Shown: positions 8,399-27,113 of the stretch, one piece after another | Layout of the letters: each line of letters opens with the position of its first letter | Numbering within the stretch: the first letter of the stretch is position 1 | Source: Ranitomeya imitator | Lineage: Eukaryota | Direction: 5' to 3' | Length of the DNA stretch: 64,000 nt | Assembly: GCF_032444005.1 (NCBI RefSeq) | Contig: NC_091288.1 | Location: forward strand, 40,858,001-40,922,000 | The notes under the pieces: model-generated | Databases searched by the model: none | The model's input: the letters and a program-made list of their open reading frames with translations, nothing else | What the model was told of the DNA's origin: nothing | Made by a program: the position numbers and the translations under genes

Positions 8399-8539
8399 TT
8401 TCTTTATCGCCTCTCATTGGGGGACACAGGAACCATGGGTGTATGCTGCTGCCACTAGGAGGCTGACACTATGCAAATAAAAAAGTTAGCTCCTCCTCTG
8501 CAGTGTACACCCCACCGACTGGCATTAAACTCTTCAGTT
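8399..8539 (+). repeat. DIRS-A left inverted terminal repeat
   Basis: Starts TTTCTTTATCGCCTCTCATTGGGGGACACAGG; its inner part is an exact reverse complement of the right ITR at 14527-14651. Confidence 0.95.
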
Positions 8540-9860
8540 TAGCTTAGTGTCAGTAGGAGGTGGACACGGGTCTTTCTTTAGACCCTTATCTACCTCAATG
8601 TGCGTCGTTTCTTTTCAGGTTTTTTCCGGATGGGATACAGGGTGAGCTGTCACACCTGTAGTCCCTCAAGCGGACTATGAGTACGGCGTGTACTGCCACC
8701 CCGTATCCTCATAGATCCCTCAGCAGGACCAAGAGCCTGGCACACAAGCGTGCTCAGAAGTCCGGTCCTGGCCCGTCCCCCACCCACTCGCCCACCAGAG
8801 CCTGTCGGTCGGAGGAGACGAGGACGTCCATCAGCAGCTCCTATGGACGTCTGATACCTTCTCAAGGTTAGTAGCAGACGACGGGGGATTTTACTAGGTG
8901 AGTATTTCTAAAGGGGTTCCCAGGACTCAGCGCGGGTCATCGCTGCATTTGCAGCACTTTCCCCGTTCCCTGCGCGGTGGCTACCTTTCCATGCCCCACC
9001 GCGTTCCTCCAGCGGTCGCCGTTCTTCCTTCAGGCCCCGGCCTCCCGGGGCCTGCTTGCGGCACACTCCTGCCTGCAACTTTTCCTTCAGCGGTCGCTGG
9101 CTCCTAATTTAGGCCCCGGCCTTTCCCGGGGCCTACTTGCGGCGTACCAGCTGCCCTCAGCGTTCCCCCCTCAGCGTTCTATGCGGGCCTCTCCGGCGGC
9201 GCTCACCTCCACAGCCAGCTGGGGCCTACTCCGGCGATTCTTCACCGGCGGCAGCGCTCCCTCTCTTAAATGCGGCGGCTGCCGCGCCGCTCTGCCAGGC
9301 AGCGTCTGCGCCGCGGGGATCTTCTCTCCGGTCACCGGCTCCTAATTTAGGCCCCGGCTTTTCCGGGGCCTACTCCGGCAACTCTTTTCTGGCGGCAGCG
9401 CTCTCTCTCTTTCATGCGGCGGCAGTGTCTGCGCCGCGGGGGTTCTTCTCAGCGGGCACCGGCTTCTAATATAGGCCCCGGCTTTTCCCGGGGCCTACTT
9501 CCGGTGCCGCGCTCCGCCCACTTCCTTCTTCATCGGGCGGGCTTTTTTTCCCGCCCGACATACTGTGCCTGCTCATCGGCGCCCCCCTGTCTGGCTCCGC
9601 CCCCTTCCTCCAGGGACAGCGTCTGTGTGTGCTCACCGCTTCTTAGCTGCAGGAGCTCACGCAGCGCGCCCCACACCTTCGCCACTGCATCCTCCGTGGG
9701 CACAAAATCTGCACAGAATCCAGCACCTCAGGGCAGGAGTTCTCCTCCGGCAAGTGGGACATCTTCCAGGACGGGTCCGTAAGTAGCTGCACTGCAGACT
9801 GACACCCCCCTCTGCCCCACTGTCCCCTAACCCACTGGCATCTTCAGAGGACCTCTCAAA

Positions 9861-11351
9861 ATGTCTACCTCTAAAGGGGGCCGCTCTCTCCCCCCTACTT
9901 CTTCTTCTGCCTTAGTCACGTACTTTGCTTGTTCGTCCTGTAACAGCAAACTTACCTCAGGTCAGTCCTCCCCGCTGTGTCAGTCCTGCAGCAACCCGAT
10001 TGTTCCCACCGCCCAGGATCCCCCGGCTGTTCCGCCCGAGAGTGATCCCCCCATCCCAGGATGGGCCGCCTCTCTGTCACAATCGGTGGCCGATTTAACA
10101 CGGGTATCTCAAACCCTGGTGTCCGCGCTGGATCGGTTACCCCTGCAGACCCCGGCCGTAGCCAGTGGGTCACAGGAACCGCCGCCAGAGCTCTCCTTGA
10201 TAAGCCACAAAAGGTCCAGACAGGAACATCGGTCTGAGTCCTCTTCGCGCTCCATCTCGCCGCTCGGCCCTCCCCCGCGGTTGGTGTCCCACCGATCCTC
10301 CTCCCCTGAGTCAGGCGAGGCATTATCTGATGCGCCTTCGGAGGATACTTCGGAGCTGGATCCTAACCAAATCGCCACCATGAGTGAGACAGTCCAGAAC
10401 CTCATTGGGGCAATAAACCAAACATGTGGCATCAAGGATCCCTCTACGGGACCCGCAGATCAGGCGGTTTCGTTTAGACGGGCCAAACCACCTTCAAAAT
10501 TTTTCGCTCCTCATCCTGAATTCGAGGAAATCGTGTCCAGAGAGAGAGAGAACCCCACTAGGCGTTTTCAGAGGGGAAAACGCCTGGGTGTGTTATATCC
10601 TTTTCCTCCAGAACTTACCGCCAATTGGTCGGCCTCTCCCTCGGTGGACCCCCCTGTTTCCAGGCTGTCCACCAACACGGTGCTTCCTCTGTCCGGCGGA
10701 GCATCTCTGAAGGATTCTAACGATAGAGTTATAGAATCCTTCGCGAAATCTGCTTTTGAAGCGGCTTCAGCGGCTCTATGTCCAGCCTTTGCGTCCACTT
10801 GGGCTTCAAAATCCATCTCAAAATGGGCCAAGGATCTTCGGCGAGGTATCCTGGATGGGGCGCCTCCCGCGCAATTAGTGGAACTTGCCAACCAGATTTC
10901 CCACGCTGGTGAATACCTGGTTTCCGCCTCCCTGGATGTCGCGTCTTGTGCGGCTCAAGCTTCCAGCAATGCCGTTGCCATCCGCCGGACCGTTTGGCTC
11001 AAGGCCTGGCAGGCGGACTTGTCCTCCAAAAAGTCCCTCACTAGTCTGCCCTTCCAGGGCTCTCGCCTCTTTGGTTCCCAGCTGGACCAAATAATTAAGG
11101 ACGCCACCGGGGGTACAAGTTCTCTTCTCCCCCAGGCTAAGCCTCGTCGCCCTCCTCCTAGACGACAGTTTCGTCCTTTTCGGCATTTTCGTCGCTTGGC
11201 TGCGTCAAACTCCTTTTCCCAGCAGCAACAGAGGCCACAGGCACGTCAAGAGAAGAAGGTGGTGTCCTTTAGGCCCACTCCGTCCTGGCGTCCTCGTTTC
11301 TCCCAGGGTAGATCCTCCAGGCCCAGGACTGGAAGATCCACCTCGGCATGA
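9861..11351 (+). CDS. DIRS-A gag-like ORF1, 496 aa
   Basis: ATG start, N-terminal CxxC...CxxC (CSSC...CQSC), and conserved blocks shared with DIRS-B and DIRS-C (VSFRRAK...FAPHPEF, DPPVSRL, ASNAVAIRRTVWLKAW.AD.SSKKSLTSLPF). Confidence 0.9.
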   Translation: MSTSKGGRSLPPTSSSALVTYFACSSCNSKLTSGQSSPLCQSCSNPIVPTAQDPPAVPPESDPPIPGWAASLSQSVADLTRVSQTLVSALDRLPLQTPAVASGSQEPPPELSLISHKRSRQEHRSESSSRSISPLGPPPRLVSHRSSSPESGEALSDAPSEDTSELDPNQIATMSETVQNLIGAINQTCGIKDPSTGPADQAVSFRRAKPPSKFFAPHPEFEEIVSRERENPTRRFQRGKRLGVLYPFPPELTANWSASPSVDPPVSRLSTNTVLPLSGGASLKDSNDRVIESFAKSAFEAASAALCPAFASTWASKSISKWAKDLRRGILDGAPPAQLVELANQISHAGEYLVSASLDVASCAAQASSNAVAIRRTVWLKAWQADLSSKKSLTSLPFQGSRLFGSQLDQIIKDATGGTSSLLPQAKPRRPPPRRQFRPFRHFRRLAASNSFSQQQQRPQARQEKKVVSFRPTPSWRPRFSQGRSSRPRTGRSTSA

Positions 11352-11382
11352 CTCTCGGCAAGACTCCAGCCCAACTCCCAGA

Positions 11383-13257
11383 TTGGGCGGCCGTCTTCTC
11401 CTTTTCAGGGACGTCTGGATTTCCGCAGTAGAGGATGCATGGGTCAGGGAAGTTGTATCCTCGGGATACAAAATAGAGTTCGCTTCCCGACCTCGGGATC
11501 GTTTCTTCCAATCCCGTCCTCCAAGAGACCCCGCTCTAGTTCCGGGCTTCTTCTCAGCCATCGCTTCTCTGCTCAAATCCGGGGTAATCGTTCCCGTCCC
11601 AGAAAAAGAACGCTTCACGGGTTTCTACTCGAATCTTTTTGTGGTACCGAAAAAAGACTGCAAAGTTCGCCCCATTCTGGACCTCAAATTGCTGAACAGG
11701 AGAGTTCGCCTGAGACACTTCAGGATGGAATCCCTTCGTTCAGTAATTGCTTCCATGGAGGCTCAGGAGTTTCTATGCTCAATAGATATCCAGGACGCCT
11801 ACCTCCATGTCCCGATATTTCCCGGACATCACCGTTTCCTGCGCTTCGCAGTGCAACGAGATCATTTTCAGTTCGTTGCTCTGCCGTTCGGTCTTGCAAC
11901 CGCGCCAAGAGTGTTCACGAAGATCATGGCGGCGCTGATGGCCATCTTGAGAGTCAGAGGCTTGGTCCTATTTCCATATCTCGACGACATCCTCATCAAG
12001 GCTCCGTCCTTCGCTCAGGCCCACGAAAGCCTGTCCATTGTTCTCGACTCCTTAGCCCGTTTCGGGTGGCTGGTAAACCGGAAGAAGTCCTGCCTTATTC
12101 CTTCTCAGCGCATCATCTTTCTGGGCATGCTTTTCGATACTCGTCAGAGCAGAGTCTTCCTTCCCACAGACAAGAGATCCATTCTCTGTCGGGACATACA
12201 CTTGCTCCAGGGTCCTCGACCTCCCTCCCTCCGTTCGGCCATGAAGATTCTGGGGAGGATGGTAGCTACATTGGAAGCGATTCCCTTCGCCCAATTCCAT
12301 TCGCGACCCCTTCAGCAAGCCATTCTGTCTCAGTGGGACAGGTCGGTCTTCTCCCTGGATCAACCGATCAAACTCTCCTTTCGGGTCAGGCGGTCTCTCA
12401 ACTGGTGGCTGACGTCACCTCTCATCTCCCAGGGCAGGTCCTTCCTTCCGGTTCACTGGCAGGTGGTGACAACGGACGCCAGCCTGCTCGGCTGGGGTGC
12501 GTTTTTTCGCCACCTGACGGTTCAGGGCCGCTGGTCGCTGCAGGAGTCATCTCTGCCGATCAACGTCCTCGAAATTCGGGCCATCTTCCTGTCCCTCCGC
12601 CACTGGGAAAGGATCCTCAGGGGCCTTCCAGTCCGGATCCAGACGGACAACGCCACGGCTGTGGCATATGTCAACCATCAGGGGGGGACTCGGAGCTCCT
12701 TGGCCCTTGCCGAGGTATCCAAGATCCTCCTTTGGGCAGAGGCAACGGTTCCGGTGATATCCGCGGTGCATATCCCCGGCGTGGAAAACTGGGCCGCCGA
12801 CTTCCTCAGCCGCGAGGGCCTCGCGGCAGGGGAATGGTCCTTGCATCCGGAGGTCTTCCATCAGATTTGTCTTCGATGGGGAACTCCGGATGTGGATCTC
12901 ACGGCGTCCCGAGTCAACAGGAAGGCTCCGCAGTTCGTCTCCAGGTCCCGCGATCCTCTCGCAGTGGACGTCGATGCTCTGGCCATTCCTTGGTCACAGT
13001 TCGAGCTGCCCTACCTGTTCCCACCCCTTCCATTACTTCCCAAACTGTTGAAGAAGATCAAAGCGGAAGGGGTGCCGGTCATCCTGATCGCCCCGGATTG
13101 GCCCAGGAGAGCTTGGTTCGCGGAGCTCGTCAACCTTCTCGCGGACGCTCCCTGGCGCCTTCCAGACAGGCCCGATCTGCTGTCCCAGGGTCCGATCTGC
13201 CACCCGAATTCTCGGTCGCTCAGTTTAACGGCGTGGCTGTTGAGACCGCGGTTCTGA
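11383..13257 (+). CDS. DIRS-A pol: reverse transcriptase, RNase H and methyltransferase-like domain. The frame is open further upstream, across the gag stop, and has no ATG near its start
   Basis: GGRL...W N-terminus, RPILDL, LPFGLATAPRVFTK, YLDD; RNase H residues TTDAS, LEIRA, QTDNATAV, AADFLSR; C-terminal DLTAS...YLFPP methyltransferase-like segment. Confidence 0.95.
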   Translation: MGGRLLLFRDVWISAVEDAWVREVVSSGYKIEFASRPRDRFFQSRPPRDPALVPGFFSAIASLLKSGVIVPVPEKERFTGFYSNLFVVPKKDCKVRPILDLKLLNRRVRLRHFRMESLRSVIASMEAQEFLCSIDIQDAYLHVPIFPGHHRFLRFAVQRDHFQFVALPFGLATAPRVFTKIMAALMAILRVRGLVLFPYLDDILIKAPSFAQAHESLSIVLDSLARFGWLVNRKKSCLIPSQRIIFLGMLFDTRQSRVFLPTDKRSILCRDIHLLQGPRPPSLRSAMKILGRMVATLEAIPFAQFHSRPLQQAILSQWDRSVFSLDQPIKLSFRVRRSLNWWLTSPLISQGRSFLPVHWQVVTTDASLLGWGAFFRHLTVQGRWSLQESSLPINVLEIRAIFLSLRHWERILRGLPVRIQTDNATAVAYVNHQGGTRSSLALAEVSKILLWAEATVPVISAVHIPGVENWAADFLSREGLAAGEWSLHPEVFHQICLRWGTPDVDLTASRVNRKAPQFVSRSRDPLAVDVDALAIPWSQFELPYLFPPLPLLPKLLKKIKAEGVPVILIAPDWPRRAWFAELVNLLADAPWRLPDRPDLLSQGPICHPNSRSLSLTAWLLRPRF

Positions 13258-14270
13258 GAGCGTCTGGCCTTTCGGACCGGGTGATTCACACCATGATTCA
13301 GGCTCGGAAGCCTTCGTCTTCCAGGATCTACTACCGCACCTGGAAGGCCTACTTCCGGTGGTGCGAGTCCAACCGCGTTCCGCCTATGGTTTTTTCCCTG
13401 CCTTCTCTTTTGGCCTTCCTTCAGGAAGGACTGGATTCGGGCCTGGCTCTTAGTTCCCTGAAGGGTCAGGTCTCTGCGCTTTCCATCCTCTTTCAGAAGA
13501 CCTTGGCCTCTCGGCCACAGGTTAAGACCTTCTTTCAGGGGGTAGCCCACGCCGTCCCGCCGTACAGGGCCCCTGTGGAGGCATGGGACCTATACCTGGT
13601 ACTGGACGTTCTGAAGGTTTCTCCCTTTGAACCTCTTAGGGAGATTCCTCTATCAGTTTTATCATGGAAGGTAGCCTTTCTTGTGGCCATCACGTCCATT
13701 CGCCGCGTTTCCGAGCTGGCGGCCCTGTCTTGCCGTCCTCCGTTTTTGGTCATTCACCAGGACAAGGTGGTCTTCCGGCCCCCACCTTCTTTTCTTCCTA
13801 AGGTGGTTTCCACCTTCCACCTCAACGAGGACATCGTTCTACCTTCCTTTTGTCCAGCTCCGACTCATCCTCTGGAGCGATCATTGAACAAGCTGGACCT
13901 TGTCAGGGCTGTGAGGATCTATCTGGACAGAACGTCCACTTTCCGGAAGACGGATTCCTTTTTCGTCATTCCTGATGGCACGCGCAGAGGCCAGCCGGCT
14001 TCTAAAGCGACTATTGCTCGATGGATCAGAATGGCAATCTTGGAGGCTTACCGGGTCAAGAACAGAGTGCCCCCTCCTCACTCTACCCGGGCAGTCGGCG
14101 CCTCCTGGGCGGTGCACCACAGGGCTTCCGCCCTACAGCTGTGCAAAGCGGCAACTTGGTCTTCCATCCACACGTTCGCCAAATTTTACAAGGTCCATAC
14201 CTACGCATCGGCGGACGCCAGCCTAGGCAGAAGGATCCTGCAGGCGGCAGTGGTGAGTCCTCTGACCTGA
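11439..14270 (+). CDS. DIRS-A tyrosine recombinase ORF, 943 aa, with a ~600 aa N-terminal extension overlapping pol in another frame
   Basis: SAM-like/core segment YYRTWKAY...GLALSSLKGQVSALS; catalytic motifs SIRRVSEL (R), HSTR (H-x-x-R), WSSIHTFAKFY (W...Y). Confidence 0.93.
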   Translation: MGQGSCILGIQNRVRFPTSGSFLPIPSSKRPRSSSGLLLSHRFSAQIRGNRSRPRKRTLHGFLLESFCGTEKRLQSSPHSGPQIAEQESSPETLQDGIPSFSNCFHGGSGVSMLNRYPGRLPPCPDISRTSPFPALRSATRSFSVRCSAVRSCNRAKSVHEDHGGADGHLESQRLGPISISRRHPHQGSVLRSGPRKPVHCSRLLSPFRVAGKPEEVLPYSFSAHHLSGHAFRYSSEQSLPSHRQEIHSLSGHTLAPGSSTSLPPFGHEDSGEDGSYIGSDSLRPIPFATPSASHSVSVGQVGLLPGSTDQTLLSGQAVSQLVADVTSHLPGQVLPSGSLAGGDNGRQPARLGCVFSPPDGSGPLVAAGVISADQRPRNSGHLPVPPPLGKDPQGPSSPDPDGQRHGCGICQPSGGDSELLGPCRGIQDPPLGRGNGSGDIRGAYPRRGKLGRRLPQPRGPRGRGMVLASGGLPSDLSSMGNSGCGSHGVPSQQEGSAVRLQVPRSSRSGRRCSGHSLVTVRAALPVPTPSITSQTVEEDQSGRGAGHPDRPGLAQESLVRGARQPSRGRSLAPSRQARSAVPGSDLPPEFSVAQFNGVAVETAVLRASGLSDRVIHTMIQARKPSSSRIYYRTWKAYFRWCESNRVPPMVFSLPSLLAFLQEGLDSGLALSSLKGQVSALSILFQKTLASRPQVKTFFQGVAHAVPPYRAPVEAWDLYLVLDVLKVSPFEPLREIPLSVLSWKVAFLVAITSIRRVSELAALSCRPPFLVIHQDKVVFRPPPSFLPKVVSTFHLNEDIVLPSFCPAPTHPLERSLNKLDLVRAVRIYLDRTSTFRKTDSFFVIPDGTRRGQPASKATIARWIRMAILEAYRVKNRVPPPHSTRAVGASWAVHHRASALQLCKAATWSSIHTFAKFYKVHTYASADASLGRRILQAAVVSPLT

Positions 14271-14313
14271 TGGAAGTCTGTTTTTTCCCGCCCTTGGGAC
14301 TGCTTTGGGACGT

Positions 14314-14415
14314 CCCATGGTTCCTGTGTCCCCCAATGAGAGGCGATAGAGAAAACAGGATTTTTGGTTGCTTACCGTAAAATCTGTTTCTTGAAGCCTC
14401 CATTGGGGGACACAG
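14314..14415 (+). repeat. DIRS-A internal complementary region (ICR)
   Basis: The first half is complementary to 8399-8439 (one mismatch) and the second half to the right terminus up to 14700; together they spell the circle junction AATCCTG-TTTT-CTCTATCG. Confidence 0.93.
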
Positions 14416-14526
14416 CTCCCTCCCAATGTTTTTGTTATATGTTCTCTGACTGTTCTCACGTTTACAGTTCTCAAGTTTGTGGTTATGGTTTTTCAACCTT
14501 GTTCTTTCTCCTACTGCTTTCTCACT

Positions 14527-14700
14527 AACTGAAGAGTTTAATGCCAGTCGGTGGGGTGTACACTGCAGAGGAGGAGCTAACTTTTTTATTTGCATAGTGT
14601 CAGCCTCCTAGTGGCAGCAGCATACACCCATGGTTCCTGTGTCCCCCAATGGAGGCTTCAAGAAACAGATTTTACGGTAAGCAACCAAAAATCCTGTTTT
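14527..14700 (+). repeat. DIRS-A right ITR with 3' extension
   Basis: Reverse complement of the left ITR, followed by GAGGCTTCAAGAAACAGATTTTACGGTAAGCAACCAAAAATCCTGTTTT, which matches the ICR. Confidence 0.95.
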
Positions 14701-14833
14701 TCCCATCTGGGAGGTTATATTGTTGTCTGTATGTTGGGAAACACGCTGTTCTCATAATGCCCATCTATTGGAGTCATGAACCGAGGATAGTATACATCTA
14801 GACAATTACTCCCAGCTTAGCATAACGCCTTAA

Positions 14834-17216: not shown

Positions 17217-18349
17217 TCTGTGCTTCAATCAGGTCCTGCACTGACCTGTGGATCTGCAGCAGCCGCCATTAATATATGTCCTTCCTTCAATCTCACCAGG
17301 TGAGTAGTTCTCTTGGTGGGCAACTTTGTGTAACGTTTGAGAAGACCCTATTCGTGCTTTTGTGTCTCCCTCTTTTCTCCCACTCCTGGTTTTGGCTTAC
17401 AAATACTGATGTAAAATACCAAATACTGCTAGTGTGACGGCAGCCTAAGACTGAGATCTTTTCCTGGGGAAGAAGAACCAACCCCCGGAATGAATCGAGT
17501 ATCATTCCTAGAAAGGAAATTCGCTGAGCCGATACTGGGGAAGATTTTTTGAAGTTTATCTTCCAACCCAGCGAGAAAGAGTATTGTGATGTTCACGGCC
17601 TCCTTGCAGGTGCGGAAAGAGGGGCCTTTGATGAGGATATCGTCTAGATACGGTAGCACCACCACGCCTCGGGTGTGTAGGATGGCCACGGCGGCCGCCA
17701 TGACCTTGGTGAATAACCTGGGAGTGGTGGCGAGGCTGAAGGGCAGAGCAACAAATTGAAAGTGACCTTCCTGAATTGCGAAGCGAAAAAACCTTTGGTG
17801 AGAAGGTAAAATAGGAATGTGGAGGTACGTGTCCTGGATGTCTATAGACGCCAGGAACTCGCCTTTTTCATTGGAGCCGATGACAAAACTAAGCGATTCC
17901 ATCCGGAACCATCGCGCCCTGACAAACTTGTTCAGCAGTTTTAGGTCCAGTATGGGCCGTACTGTACCGTCCTTTGGAACAATGAAGAGGTTTGAATAAA
18001 AACCTTGAAACCTTTCGTTTTGAGGGACCGGAATAATAACTTCGTCTTTTCTCAGGGAGTTATAGCTTGGAAGAACTCTGATGCTTTTGCCCTGGAAGGA
18101 GAAGACAGGAAAAAACGATTTGGTGGAAGAGAGGAGAATTTTATCTTGTATCCGGAGGACACTAGGTCGCGGACCCATTCATCGTGAACGACCGAGAGCC
18201 ACGCGTCGCTGAAGGAAAGCAGGCAGCCGCCTACTTTGAGGGTGTCCTCCGGATACCGCAGGGAGTCATTGTGTGGGAGACCTGCCCGGTCTGGACCCCT
18301 GGATCCTGACTGCCTAGGCCTGTCTCTCCATGAAGGGGAAGGTTTGTAA

Positions 18350-19940: not shown

Positions 19941-21413
19941 ATGTCCCAGTCAAAGTCTAAAAAGTCCTCTAAGGTGCATACTACCTTCTTTTCTGCGTGT
20001 ACCACCTGCCAGGCTCCACTTCCTCGGCCTCAGAGTTCCTTCCTCTGCTCAGCCTGCGATGCCCCATGTGCCCAGGAGCCCTCCACCGACTCTGGCGTAC
20101 CTAGTCCCCCCGCGTGGGTCGCGTCACTTTCGCAATCCGTGGATTTTTTAGCTAATGCCATCAAATCCATTCAGAACCCTCCTGGGGAACAGGGCAACCC
20201 GTTACAGGTGTTAAGAGATCCCTCCGTAGCAGGGGAATCGTCGGCCACCAGGGGCCGCTCTCTCCGGAAAGAGGCACGGTCATCTAGAAAACGGATCCGC
20301 ACTACCTCTCCTGAGCGCTCACCTCGCCACTCAGCTTCTGGCAGCTCCACCTCTCGCTCACCCTCTTTGGGGGCTCGCAGCGTTCACGACTCTGAATATG
20401 AGTCTGATGTATCCTTAGACCCGGAGGCTCCGGAGTTTAGATCTACGGTTGACTCCCTCATTGTGGCAGTCAATCACGCACTTAAAGTGGACGATGACTC
20501 TAATTCTGCTCCGGACCACGCAGTCTCCTTTACTAGAACCAAACGTTCTCATAAAACTTTCGCCTCTCACCCTGATTTTCTGGATATAGTCAGGCGACAC
20601 AGGGAGCGTCCGGATAAGCGTTTCACGGGAAAAAAGGACCTTGTATCGAAATATCCTTTTTCAGCAGATCTCGTGAAAGACTGGACGGATCCCCCAATAG
20701 TAGATCCTCCGGTTTCGCGCCTTGCTTCCAAAATGCTCCTATCCGTCCCGGAGGGCGCTTCGATTAAGAGTCCCACTGAACGCCAGCTAGATTCCCTAGC
20801 TCGCTCAGTGTACGAAGCCTCAGGTTCTTCCCTATCTCCCTCTTTCGCCGCGGCTTGGGTGGCCAAGGCAATGGTTTCCTGGGCGGACGCTCTAGCGAAA
20901 TCCATTCATGAACAGGATCTCCTGTCTGAGATGGCGGACCTTGCTAAACAAATAGCCATGGCTGGTGATTACGTGATGTACGCATCTCTCGATGCAGCGA
21001 ATTGCGCAGCATCGGCGGCCTCAAACGCCATCACTATCAGAAGGGCTATTTGGCTCAGGGAGTGGCGCGCAGATTCCTCCTCTAAAAAATCTCTGATTTC
21101 TCTCCCTTTTTAGAGCGGGCGTCTTTTTGGTCAAAAGCTAGACCAGCTTATTTCCGACGCTACAGGGGGAAAGAGCAAGTTCCTTCCCCAACAGAGGCCC
21201 AAGGCGGCCTTCCAGCGCCAGCCATATTTTCGCTTTCGGCCCTTTCGTACCAGCCCAGCCTGGTCCAATCCTGCCGGTTTTTCCAGATCGGACCGTTCCG
21301 CTCGCTCAGACAGGGACGTTCGTCCCTCTTTCAGGCCGAATCCGTCCTGGCGAGGAAAGCCTAGGCAGCCCAGGACCAGAGGTTCCAGACCCCCCAGATT
21401 CCCTCCTCAATGA
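19941..21413 (+). pseudogene. DIRS-B gag; premature TAG at 21111-21113, natural TGA at 21411-21413
   Basis: The frame continues after the TAG with SGRLFGQKLDQLISDATGGKS, homologous to DIRS-A SRLFGSQLDQIIKDATGG. Confidence 0.9.
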
Positions 21414-23288
21414 CTCGGGAATGGCGCCAGTCGATACCACCAGAGTAGGCGGACGCCTACTTCTTTTTCAGCAAGCCTGGCTCTCCGTCATTCACGACGA
21501 ATGGGTCAGGGATCTGGTGTCGTCTGGCTACAAAATAGAGTTCTCCGCTCCTCCTCCAACTCGGTTTTTTCCCTCTCATCTCCCCAGTTCGGGAGCTCAG
21601 TCTCGCGCCCTCCTTTGCGCCATTCACTCCCTCCGCCAGAGCGGGGTCATTGTTCCGGTTCCGGAACACGAGAAGTTCAAAGGTTTCTACTCGAACCTCT
21701 TCGTCGTGCCAAAAAAGGACGGGAAAGTGCGCCCCATTTTGGATCTGAAGCTCCTGAACAAGTGCGTAAAAGTACGACACTTCAGGATGGAATCGCTCAG
21801 GTCGGTCATCTCGATGGAAAGAGGGGAATTCTTGGCATCGATAGATATCAAGGATGCCTATCTTCACATTCCAATATTCCCGCCACATCAAAGGTTCCTC
21901 CGCTTTGCCGTTCTAGAGGACCATTTCCAGTTCACGGCCTTACCCTTCGGTCTTGCCACGGCACCCAGGGTATTCACGAAGGTCATGGCGGCTGTCATGG
22001 CCATTCTTCATTCTCGAGGAGTCGTCGTGTTGCCTTACTTAGACGACCTCCTCATAAAGGGTCCGTTTTATCAGGCCTGCGAGGCAAGCGTCCACATTAC
22101 TTTGGATTCTCTTTCGCGCCTGGGCTGGTTGATCAACTTGGACAAGTCCTCTCCCGTTCCTGCCCGACGGATCTCCTTTCTGGGAATGATCCTGGACACT
22201 TCAAGGGGTCTGGTCTTGCTTCCTCGGTCCAAGGCCCAAGCGCGTCAGCAAGGAGCCCGAACGCTCTGCCATCCTCGCCCGCGAACCATTCGGTTTGCCA
22301 TGAAAATCCTGGGAAAGATGGTTGCAGCAATCAAAGCGGTTCCTTTCGCTCAACTCCATCTCCGCCCCTTGCAACAGGCTCTGCTGGACAACTGGGACAG
22401 GAGTCTCTCATCTCTCGACCGTCCTTGCCCGTTGTCTCCGCGGATCAGACAATCTCTTGTATGGTGGACCCTGGGTCCATCTCTTCTTCAGGGGAAGTCC
22501 TTTCTCCCGATCCGCTGGTTAGTGGTAACTACCGACGCCAGTCTCCTCGGCTGGGGTGCGGTGTTTCTTCACCACTCTGCCCAGGGCCGTTGGACAGTTC
22601 GGGAGTCAAGGCTCCCTATCAACATCCTGGAGATTCGTGCGATTAGACTTGCCCTGAGTCGCTTTCACGCCCTGCTCGCGGGTCACCCAATACGAGTCCA
22701 ATTGGACAACGTCACAGCGGTGGCTTACATAAACCACCAGGGGGGTACCCGCAGCAGGGCGGCGATGCAGGAAGTCTCCCGCATTCTTCGTTGGGCCGAA
22801 ACCAACCATTCCACCATTTCCGCGGTGCACATTCTGGGAGTCGAAAACTGGGCGGCGGACTTTGAGCCGCCAGGGCCTTGCCTCGGGGGAGTGTGAACTC
22901 CATCCAGAGGTTTTTCGACAGATCTGCCTTCGCTGGGGGACCAGATTGAACGCCAAGGTCCACAACTTCATTGCGCGTTCTCGGGATCCTCAGGCCATCG
23001 GAGTGGATGCGCTGATATTCCCTTGGAATCAGTTTCAACTCCCATATGTGTTTCCTCCACTTCCCTTACTGCCGAAGGTGATCCGAAAGATCAAGACGGA
23101 GGGAGTTTCGGTCATTCTGGTCGCCCCAGATTGGCCACGTCGCGCTTGGTACGTGGAGCTCGTTCAGCTCGTAGCCGACGCCCCCTGGCGGTTACCAGAC
23201 CGCCCAGACCTGCTTTGCCAAGGACCGATCTGCCACCAGAGCTCGGGCCCTACGTTTAACGGCGTGGCTGTTGAAACCTGGATTCTAA
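21412..23288 (+). pseudogene. DIRS-B pol (RT-RH-MT) with frameshifts near 22860 and 23245 and a short deletion
   Basis: VGGRLL, YLDD and TTDAS are present; homology shifts frame after NWAADF; the PDVDLxAS segment is partly deleted. Confidence 0.9.
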
Positions 23289-24307: not shown

Positions 24308-27113
24308 TCAGATGGTACACGGAGTTATTTGGTTGTATTGTTTCCCTCCCAGGGACTGCTTTGGGACGTCCCATGGTCCTGTGTCCCCCAATGTGGCGAA
24401 GGAGAAATAGGGATTTTTGTGTGTACTCACCGTAAAATCCTTTTCTCCGAGCCACTCATTGGGGGACACAGCACCCACCCTGGTAGCCTTACGGCTCGTT
24501 ACCTTTTTTAGTTTTAGACTGTTTTGTTGACATGTTATACTCTAATGTTACTTGATATTTTGTTATTATCCTACTGCTTTTGCCCTGAACTGGGTCTCTG
24601 GAAGCCAGCATGAGGGTGTATACTGCAGGGGAGGAGCTAACCTTTTATTGTCTCAGCTGTCAGCCTCCTAGTGACAGCAGCATAACACCCCATGGTCCTG
24701 TGTCCCCCAATGAGTGGCTCGGAGAAAAGGATTTTACGGTGAGTACACACAAAAATCCCTATTTTGGAAGCAGAATCCGCACGCCAGTCCCTGAGCCATA
24801 AGGACCTCTGGATGGTGATGGCGTTTGCTGCTGCTTGCGAAGCACAGTTAGCAGCATCCAGGGATGCGGTCACTACAAAATCTCCAGCTCTGGCTATCTG
24901 AGTAGCGAGGTCTGCTATCTCGGGGGGGAAGATTGGTATCCAGCACCGCTGAAGACAAGATCTCAGCCCAGTGGGTCATAGCCTTAGCCACCCATGTAGC
25001 AACAAAAGATGGGAAGAGTGTGGCTGCTGAGGCTTCAAACGTTGTATTGTTGATCTGACGATCGGTTGGGTTTTTAATCGAGGCGCCCTCCGAAGAGGAT
25101 AAAACAGATTTAGTAGCCAGGTGAGATACCGGGGGAGAGTACGACCAATCTTTTCTTAGATCTTGGGCAAAGGGATATTTTGACTCCATGGGCTTCTGCC
25201 CTGTGAATCGTTTATCTGGACGGATCCTGTGAGATTCAACGATTTCCTTAAATTCGGGATGAGTGGCAAACACTCTATGAGCTCGCTTGGTCCTCTTAAA
25301 GGACACGGCATGATCCATTTTGGATAAAGGTTCCTCATCAAGCTTCAAAACCTTATTCACTGACTCAGAGAGTGGAGAGTCTCTTGATCGTGATGAAATT
25401 CCTGATCTAGGGACGTGTCAGAATCGTCCTCTGAAACAGGTTCTCTACTAGCCCCAATGGAAGGGGAGCGAGAAATGGAGCTCTCAGAACCCGAATCCCG
25501 GTGATGGTCTGGGGATATGGCATGAGTCCTTTTCCAGGAAGAGTGAGAACTCCTTGGCAAGGTACGACCCCTGGAATACGAGAGGTTCTGACGATCGGAA
25601 GTGTCGTCTGAAATCGTGCCCTTGTTACAGGAAGGGTCTCGGAACGAGTCTAACGCTTTTGCCAGGGATGCCATAGACCGGGTAAGGGAGGTAGCCCACT
25701 CAGGGGGACTAGGCTCACTGGGTTCGGTATCAGTAACAGGTGGTCCCTGAACAGTCACCGGTTCACAAGCTGTGCACAATGCAGTATTGTGACCCCTTTG
25801 TAAGGACACCTTACAAGAGGTACATGCAGCGAAGAACACAGTGTGGGTTTTCCCAGACTTTTTGTGAGGCTTTGATTGAGACATAGCATAGCCTTGAGGA
25901 GAGCGCTTACTAGCAGGAGAAGGGTTAAGCTATGTTTCTGCAGCTTACCTAGGTCCTGTGTCTTGAGTCCCCAGGGAAGGTCTGCGGTGTATGCCCAGAA
26001 AACGCTAGTCCTGAAGGCTGTGATTCAAAAGGCTGGAGCAGCATCAGCTCTGTGGGTGTCCCAAGATGGCCGCCGAGATCGGGAAGTGAGCGCTTCTCGG
26101 GGAAAAGCCGGGGCTAAATTTTAAACCTGCGGTTGCGGCTGCAGCGCCGCGACCGCTATTAGCGCCATCCTTAAGCCACACTCCTTCATTGAATTGCCGC
26201 ACTGCGGTCCACCCACGGACCTGGGCTTTAAGGTGTGGACCTCCCAAACCCCGGGGACTAGGACCCCCCAGCGCCTCGGCCCCCGCAGTGTACTCACGGT
26301 AGATGCAGTGGGCCGGTGCTCATTCCACTGTCGCCATAGTCAGGGAGGAGGTGGAGAGCTTCTGCCGCCTTCCATCATCCGCTATATCAGTGGTGATGCA
26401 GAGGGGGGCTGCATGGACGCCATACATATTATATCCGGCTATGCACCTGGCTCCAGGAGAGGTAGATGGAGGGCTACTCCATGTGGTCGCCTGCTATGGA
26501 GGGGGGAGATCGGAATGCGAAGGAACCGTCGCCCGTAAAGTGAGCTCAGGGCTGGCATCCAACGTTGCAGGAAAGGGTACGGGAGGGACGCTCCACGTAC
26601 TTGCCTGTTGATTCTGGGGAGATCGGAACCTAGAAAGGATCCGTCGCCCCCATTCGCTCTGTTGAGGGTAAAATAGAATAAAAAGTAAAAAACTAAAATA
26701 AAAACGGTGGGGTCTGAAAGCAGACCCAAGTGCCTCCTACAGACACTAAGCAAGAACTGGTTCACTTAGAGCCAGCAGGAGGGTGTATACTGCAGGGAGG
26801 AGCTATTCTTTGTGTTAATTAGAGTCCTCCTAGTGGCAGCAGCATAACACCCATGGTCCTGTGTCCCCCAATGAAGCATAGGAGAAACTACAACTCCCAG
26901 GATGTTGAATATGTGGGGGGTTGTAATTTTACAACAGCTTTGATCACACTTTGCGTTCCACTGATCTAAGGATTCCTTATAATATTGTTTTAAAAAAAAT
27001 AATCCAGTTAAACTAATTCAGGATTTATTCTAATAAATGTAATAAGGACATTGGTAAAAAGTGATGTCAGGATTATAGAATTCCCCCTGCTTCTACTGGG
27101 GCATAATGCCTCT

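Follow-up and report, generated by a model that had tools for sequence, protein, structure and literature searches.

We analysed a stretch of 64,000 nucleotides (nt) of the Ranitomeya imitator genome (contig NC_091288.1, positions 40,858,001 to 40,922,000, referred to as the window), which carries DIRS-A, a DIRS1-like retrotransposon with a gag open reading frame (ORF), a pol ORF and a tyrosine recombinase (Table 1). A sequence-only reading of the window had proposed that the single stop codon of gag gives rise to three proteins in DIRS-A and in two further copies, DIRS-B and DIRS-C. Having compared these copies with related elements, we put at about even odds (a probability near 0.5) the proposal that DIRS1-like retrotransposons use their gag stop for programmed recoding that yields Gag, Gag-Pol and a Gag-bridge-recombinase protein. 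Specifically, most ribosomes would terminate at the GCA-UGA-CUC of DIRS-A and release Gag, a fraction would decode the weak UGA as sense and cross a bridge of ~650 codons lying over pol to make a Gag-linker-recombinase protein of ~1469 amino acids, and another fraction would slip to +1 at or just before the same stop to make Gag-Pol with its reverse transcriptase (RT) as well as its RNase H. The arrangement of frames, the bias towards particular stops and stop contexts, the lack of starts and the selected openness without amino-acid constraint are read directly from the DNA, and what we infer from them is that ribosomes read through and shift to some extent and that the shift takes place at the stop itself. 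The more general statement, that across animal DIRS1-like elements one weak UGA splits ribosomes three ways with ~2 kb read in two frames, is put forward tentatively and at somewhat less than even odds.

The comparison set consisted of vertebrate-type relatives with 55-65% pol identity, one from X. laevis (L001) and four families from Logan/ENA contigs (L082, L085, L087 and L088), together with 80 loci of 32-40% identity found when an alignment of pol N-termini was used to scan metagenome contigs. Loci were anchored on the GGRL..F...W block of pol, which gave 68 anchored loci outside the window, and clusters at 70% pol identity plus the vertebrate-type loci, with the intact ones kept, gave 38 families. 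The gag stop in these families is TGA in 32, TAG in six and TAA in none, and is followed by C in 25 (TGA-C in 23, TGA-CTN in 15). In these elements pol ends in TAG (21), TAA (nine) or TGA (six) and the recombinase in TAG (13), TAA (nine) or TGA (six), such that TGA ends gag in 32 of 38 cases as compared with 12 of 64 for pol and recombinase together (Fisher p=7e-11, among families that share ancestry). The stop contexts match ones known to be leaky, namely UGA-CUN, which includes the UGA-CUC of DIRS-A, as well as UGA-CGG and UAG-G. The six TAG families show UAG-G contexts and one UAG-CAA-CCA, and A is frequent at positions -1 and -2 of the stop. In reporter assays, termination was weaker at UGA_C, where +1 shifting and readthrough both rose, and CUA favoured readthrough (PMC9841425). 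At the six TGA-CTA sites the next base is T or C and never G, which fits an open +1 frame because a G would make TAG in the pol frame. A decayed copy from Asterias (L089) reads AAG TGA CTT and also has pol in +1.

In regards to pol, a +1 shift giving Gag-Pol is probable from the arrangement of frames and starts. Relative to the long upstream ORF, pol is in +1 in 44 of the 68 anchored loci, in -1 in eight, in the same frame in five and ambiguous in 11. DIRS-A has 97 open pol-frame codons ahead of GGRL and no ATG among them, 31 of the 38 families lack a pol-frame ATG between GGRL and a point 30 nt upstream of the gag stop, and 16 families have none anywhere in the open stretch upstream of GGRL, with the conserved pol block beginning 6-76 codons past the gag stop. 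A downstream ORF that is in +1, overlaps the stop and has no start codon of its own is the arrangement associated with +1 frameshifting, and it is the one found here. The loci with pol in the -1 frame (L020, L038, L043, L070, L071, L073, L076 and L077) or in the same frame (L042, L044, L058, L059 and L079) share the pol N-terminal block with the others, and thus the layout of the junction differs between lineages. We also considered annotated gag-RT fusion proteins (P0015, P0019 and P0027) as natural examples of the fused product; their sequence follows the gag tail as translated in the pol frame, and they were rejected as frame-bridging gene models or mutated copies.

Several observations weigh against recoding at this stop. 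The codon in the ribosomal P site before the stop is variable, with 14 different codons among the 38 families (CAA, UCC, AAA, GCA and others), and therefore there is no single, conserved shift-prone site; only the vertebrate-type group retains GCA. Upstream of the stop, the +1 frame stays open for 35-145 codons, and therefore the frames do not determine where the shift would occur, nor does the sequence pin it to the stop. A pol-frame ATG does lie close to the stop in seven of the 38 families, one of them DIRS-B (at 21421). A general 3' RNA structure or consensus fold was not found past the gag stop, the 100 nt beyond it giving a mean folding z of -1.2 versus -0.8 and -0.7 in control windows, which is only a slight excess, and DIRS-A folds no better than its shuffles (z +0.7 to +1.8). 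Finally, the families share ancestry, so that the counts are not independent events, and most comparison loci are metagenome contigs without a known host.

On the basis of the weak folding excess and the lack of a shared fold we rejected a conserved 3' RNA structure as a candidate signal, and Rfam returned no match. Two families carry strong G/C hairpins of 11-13 bp located 3-6 nt past the gag stop (L082:1915-1947 and L088:2738-2766), the 3' arm of which is formed by the Val-Gly-Gly codons of pol; the DIRS-A counterpart is only 6 bp long. The upstream openness of the pol frame was rejected as the mark of an earlier shift site as it is mostly due to the hydrophilic gag tail, in a test that is itself biased by how the tail was defined.

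The non-conserved P-site codon, the failure to find a common 3' stimulator and the seven families with a pol-frame ATG close to the stop are also what would be seen if readthrough is real and pol is made without a frameshift, by a non-AUG start, by reinitiation after gag, by internal entry or from a separate RNA. We regard this as unlikely given the 31 families with no pol-frame ATG near the stop, the 16 with none in the open frame upstream of GGRL, and the retention of the +1 relation to gag in 44 loci. Splicing across the gag stop was rejected, since no recurrent GT-AG joint was present at the junction in contigs of four runs covering the element, which is weak evidence as it comes from contigs only and the RNA status of the runs was guessed.

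The second arm of the proposal, readthrough of the gag stop, is a prediction that is well supported by comparison. The gag frame of DIRS-A contains a single stop from 9828 to 14268, located at 11349, as compared to dozens in the third frame. The bridge that overlies pol has no stops where 20.9 are expected from synonymous shuffling of pol, and 22 are present in the third frame. This is not peculiar to DIRS-A. When 35 families with less than 70% pol identity were analysed, the gag frame of 33 was stop-free over the full pol overlap of 530-765 codons, as compared with 12-40 stops predicted by synonymous shuffling of pol and 13-82 present in the third frame. Beyond the single stop, the gag frame extends ~960-1140 codons in nearly all intact families. 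An in-frame ORF past a single stop, held open by selection and preceded by a leaky stop context, is the configuration known from readthrough genes. The bridge of DIRS-A is only 32% identical to that of DIRS-B, versus 63% for pol of the same copies, and its apparent omega is 1.1-2.4 in related pairs versus 0.08-0.23 for pol, with the recombinase part conserved. The overlapped stretch of the gag frame is thus kept open but free of amino-acid constraint, as would be expected of a bridge that is translated through.

A related alternative is that Gag-Pol does arise by a +1 shift while the recombinase is initiated independently, at an internally located AUG or near-cognate codon or by reinitiation after pol, with the open gag frame being incidental. 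The ATG located 87 nt past the gag stop in DIRS-A, DIRS-B and DIRS-C would suit such a start, as would a gag-frame ATG 38-44 nt past the pol stop in four vertebrate-type families (at ~13295 in the window, and in L082, L085 and L088). The +87 ATG is not conserved, however, and the first gag-frame ATG past the stop lies at a variable distance of 21 to 1860 nt in 36 families. Between the gag stop and that first ATG, 124 stops are expected over these families and none is seen; initiation at the ATG therefore cannot explain a frame that is open from its first codon, as it is in 33 of the 35 families, and we consider an independent recombinase start quite improbable.

Some additional features of the downstream frame were observed. 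The ATG 38-44 nt past the pol stop was absent from the four remaining families that were checked, and it could be a conserved recombinase Met or a reinitiation start. In L082 a TAG at L082:3919-3921 interrupts the N-terminal recombinase part and was assembled identically from three runs, and therefore a slightly defective copy may be transcribed. Three metagenome loci (L006:575-3841, L007:43-3417 and L011:1216-3969) have, ahead of the stop, a gag-frame ORF of 860-1125 codons with no relationship to frog gag, and when what follows the stop is counted in, a single frame extends over more than 2000 codons with one stop as its only interruption. Pfam gave no matches to the long upstream ORFs of the metagenome loci.

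It could also be argued that there is no recoding, and that the motif and layout are ancestral with the three proteins made from separate spliced or subgenomic RNAs. All of the families are related, so shared features could indeed be ancestral, and the RNA evidence consists solely of contigs from runs of guessed RNA status. Against this, the pol and recombinase stops have changed freely over the same divergence over which the gag stop has stayed TGA, and the openness of ~650 codons where 12-40 stops are expected would need ongoing selection; we judge this explanation very improbable. Entry into the downstream gag frame by a -1 shift out of pol would fit the frames, as gag is in -1 relative to pol, and is nonetheless barely credible. 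Beginning with the first codon beyond the gag stop, the gag frame contains no stops, also not in the 6-76 codons ahead of GGRL, an openness that would be needless if entry were further downstream, and two shifts would be needed where one readthrough suffices.

The recoding proposal differs in its details from the sequence-only reading, which had described the stop as an invariant A-TGA-CTC with fixed spacing. Within the window its description was accurate. The gag TGA is at 11349 in DIRS-A, at 21411 in DIRS-B and at 18268-18266 on the minus strand in DIRS-C, each within ATGACTC; pol is in +1 in all three and reads D-S followed by 10 codons ahead of GGRL or GGCL; a gag-frame ATG starts 87 nt past each stop; DIRS-A and DIRS-C lack a pol-frame ATG ahead of GGRL and DIRS-B has the one at 21421; the gag PSW motif lies 20 codons from the stop in DIRS-A and DIRS-B; and gag plus its extension in DIRS-A amounts to 496+1+972 = 1469 codons. 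The stretch from the stop to the +87 ATG is indeed stop-free in DIRS-A and DIRS-B, with a TGA directly preceding the ATG in DIRS-C, and for this 29-codon spacer in the window alone only 0.8 stops are expected (P(0)=0.43, not significant).

Outside of the three window copies the word "invariant" proved to be an overstatement. Five related vertebrate-type families keep A-TGA and similar gag tails (..STSA, ..PTSA, ..PPSA or ..QSSA) and differ in what follows, with GCA TGA CGG in L001, GCA TGA TGT in L082, GCA TGA AGG in L085 and L088, and TTA TGA AGG in L087. The distance from the stop to GGRL is 37, 37, 34, 28 and 28 nt in L001, L082, L085, L087 and L088, respectively, and 19-229 nt over the 38 families, and the PSW-to-stop distance is 17 codons in four of the five relatives. 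We therefore rejected strict invariance of the heptamer and spacing; variation in the +4 base and the spacing among families had been named in advance as evidence against the strict version. The +87 ATG was likewise rejected as a conserved recombinase start as it is CTG, TTG or GTG in these five relatives, and the suspicion already voiced, that it is a by-product of the pol Trp codon, holds. Given that the heptamer, the exact spacing and the +87 ATG all vary in relatives, these are features of close kin or by-products of pol coding and not signals. The wider pattern, in which gag ends in UGA(-C), pol is in +1 and the gag frame continues without stops beyond that point, does exceed chance by our comparison. 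The idea of a three-way stop, with Gag from termination, Gag-Pol from a +1 shift and Gag-recombinase from readthrough, is partly supported: it is the best available reading of the comparative data, with a better fit than could have been known from the window, and what it loses is the generality of the heptamer, the spacing and the ATG.

The putative site can be compared with known recoding systems. Like antizyme-type +1 shifts (vertebrate OAZ1 UCC_UGA_U, yeast OAZ1 GCG_UGA_C and bacterial RF2 CUU_UGA_C; PMC5009743), it has a +1 ORF without a start, a UGA in the A site in a weak context and Asp (GAC or GAU) as the first +1 codon, and UCC_UGA is present in five and CCC_UGA in two of the 38 families. 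Unlike those systems, the DIRS elements have no conserved P-site codon, no demonstrated 3' pseudoknot or 5' stimulator and no known link to polyamines or a release factor, and their zero frame stays open past the stop. The single in-frame stop after gag and the contexts UGA-CUN, UGA-CGG and UAG-G resemble programmed readthrough, as in murine leukaemia virus (MuLV) gag-pol (UAG-G), alphaviruses and plant viruses (UGA-CGG or UGA-CUA) and OPRL1 (UGA_CUAG). A conserved downstream structure was not found in DIRS, however, and in contrast to MuLV the product would be Gag plus recombinase joined through ~650 unconstrained residues over pol, rather than Gag-Pol. As in Ty1 and Ty3, a retrotransposon has pol in +1 of gag and, as proposed here, would express it as a fusion; whereas the Ty shift takes place within the overlap at a slow sense codon (AGG or AGU), the likely pause site in DIRS is the stop, and a second product would use the zero frame.

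The copies in the window differ in their state of preservation. The two inverted terminal repeats (ITRs) of DIRS-A (8415-8539 and 14527-14651) are 125 nt each and 100% complementary, and its internal complementary region at 14314-14415 matches both termini (14314-14354 with the left end, 14345-14415 with the right end). These features, together with the order of a gag-like ORF1 followed by RT/RNase H and by a tyrosine recombinase where other elements have a DDE integrase, place it among the DIRS1-like elements, and because the ITRs are fully complementary and every ORF is intact the copy looks young and is possibly active. Its gag is 35-43% identical to that of L082, L085 and L088, and the closest database protein, at 97% identity, is from Ranitomeya imitator itself. 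A methyltransferase-like domain following RNase H is a further feature of DIRS1-like elements; Pfam at E<=0.01 gave no methyltransferase match in pol of DIRS-A or DIRS-B, and residues 443-635 of the DIRS-A pol have no domain assignment. The ATG-started gag-frame ORF of DIRS-A spans 11439-14270 (943 amino acids), with the recombinase being its last ~340 residues. This recombinase region is 66% identical over 346 amino acids to that of DIRS-B, which matches Pfam Phage_integrase (E=3.3e-4), and weak, sub-threshold integrase or SAM-like Pfam matches are present in the DIRS-A recombinase region and in five of seven relatives scanned. DIRS-B reads CAA TGA CTC at its gag stop (TGA at 21411-21413) and has an earlier in-frame gag stop at 21111 and a break in the pol frame near 22862, and DIRS-C has the same CAA TGA CTC on the minus strand. 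Adjoining the 3' end of DIRS-B is a fourth DIRS gag fragment at 24754-25839 (minus strand), with 40-48% identity to DIRS-A gag, and therefore the window holds a cluster of at least four DIRS insertions.

Table 1. Coordinates of DIRS features in the window.
Feature	Position	Strand	Basis or remark
DIRS-A, complete DIRS1-like retrotransposon, ~6.3 kb	8399..14707	+	ITRs, internal complementary region, intact ORFs
gag ORF, 496 amino acids, ending in TGA 11349-11351	9861..11351	+	ORF list; Pfam LAP2alpha E=6.5e-13
Candidate recoding site GCA TGA CTC (P-site codon, stop, 3' context)	11346..11354	+	Sequence and family stop counts
pol ORF (RT and RNase H), +1 frame	11350..13257	+	Pfam RVT_1 E=1.5e-18, RT_RNaseH; frame map
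Gag-frame bridge overprinted on pol, stop-free	11352..13257	+	Stop counts, identity to DIRS-B
ATG in gag frame, 87 nt past stop	11439..11441	+	Base preceding pol TGG
End of gag-frame ORF outside pol overlap, tyrosine recombinase, stop 14268-14270	13258..14270	+	66% identity to DIRS-B
DIRS-C gag stop within ATGACTC	18262..18268	-	Copy heavily decayed
DIRS-B gag stop within ATGACTC	21410..21416	+	Decayed copy

The existence of a long ORF overlap in DIRS1-like elements is already known, with the recombinase ORF overlapping pol and its catalytic part located in the non-overlapping 3' end (PMC3266345, Piednoel et al. 2011). The literature that we found describes three ORFs from ATG-based finders as opposed to one gag frame with one stop. 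No paper linking DIRS to frameshifting or readthrough was found, an earlier mention in older Goodwin and Poulter papers being possible, and a major recoding review does not mention DIRS. What appears to be new is that the recombinase frame would be the gag frame interrupted by one stop, with recoding, which no paper that we found proposes.

There is also a bearing on genome annotation. Many annotated frog proteins (P0007, P0010, P0019, P0025, P0027 and others) join the DIRS RT to host-type Pfam domains or to gag, and some frog gene models cross the gag-pol frame change by intron-like gaps. These chimeric models, which bridge frames or fuse the element to domains of host genes, look like contamination of the annotation by DIRS elements.

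The literature that we found offers no explanation of how the three overlapping DIRS ORFs are expressed from one RNA. The recoding proposal would account for the ~2 kb over which the recombinase frame overlaps pol without amino-acid conservation. If it is true, then one frame serves only as a translational bridge, stop-free yet variable, that joins the recombinase to Gag in an element lacking a protease. One stop feeding both a +1 shift and readthrough would also be an unusually compact means of controlling the ratio of three proteins, and these elements would provide a natural case of the competition between termination, readthrough and frameshifting that has so far been shown mainly in reporters.

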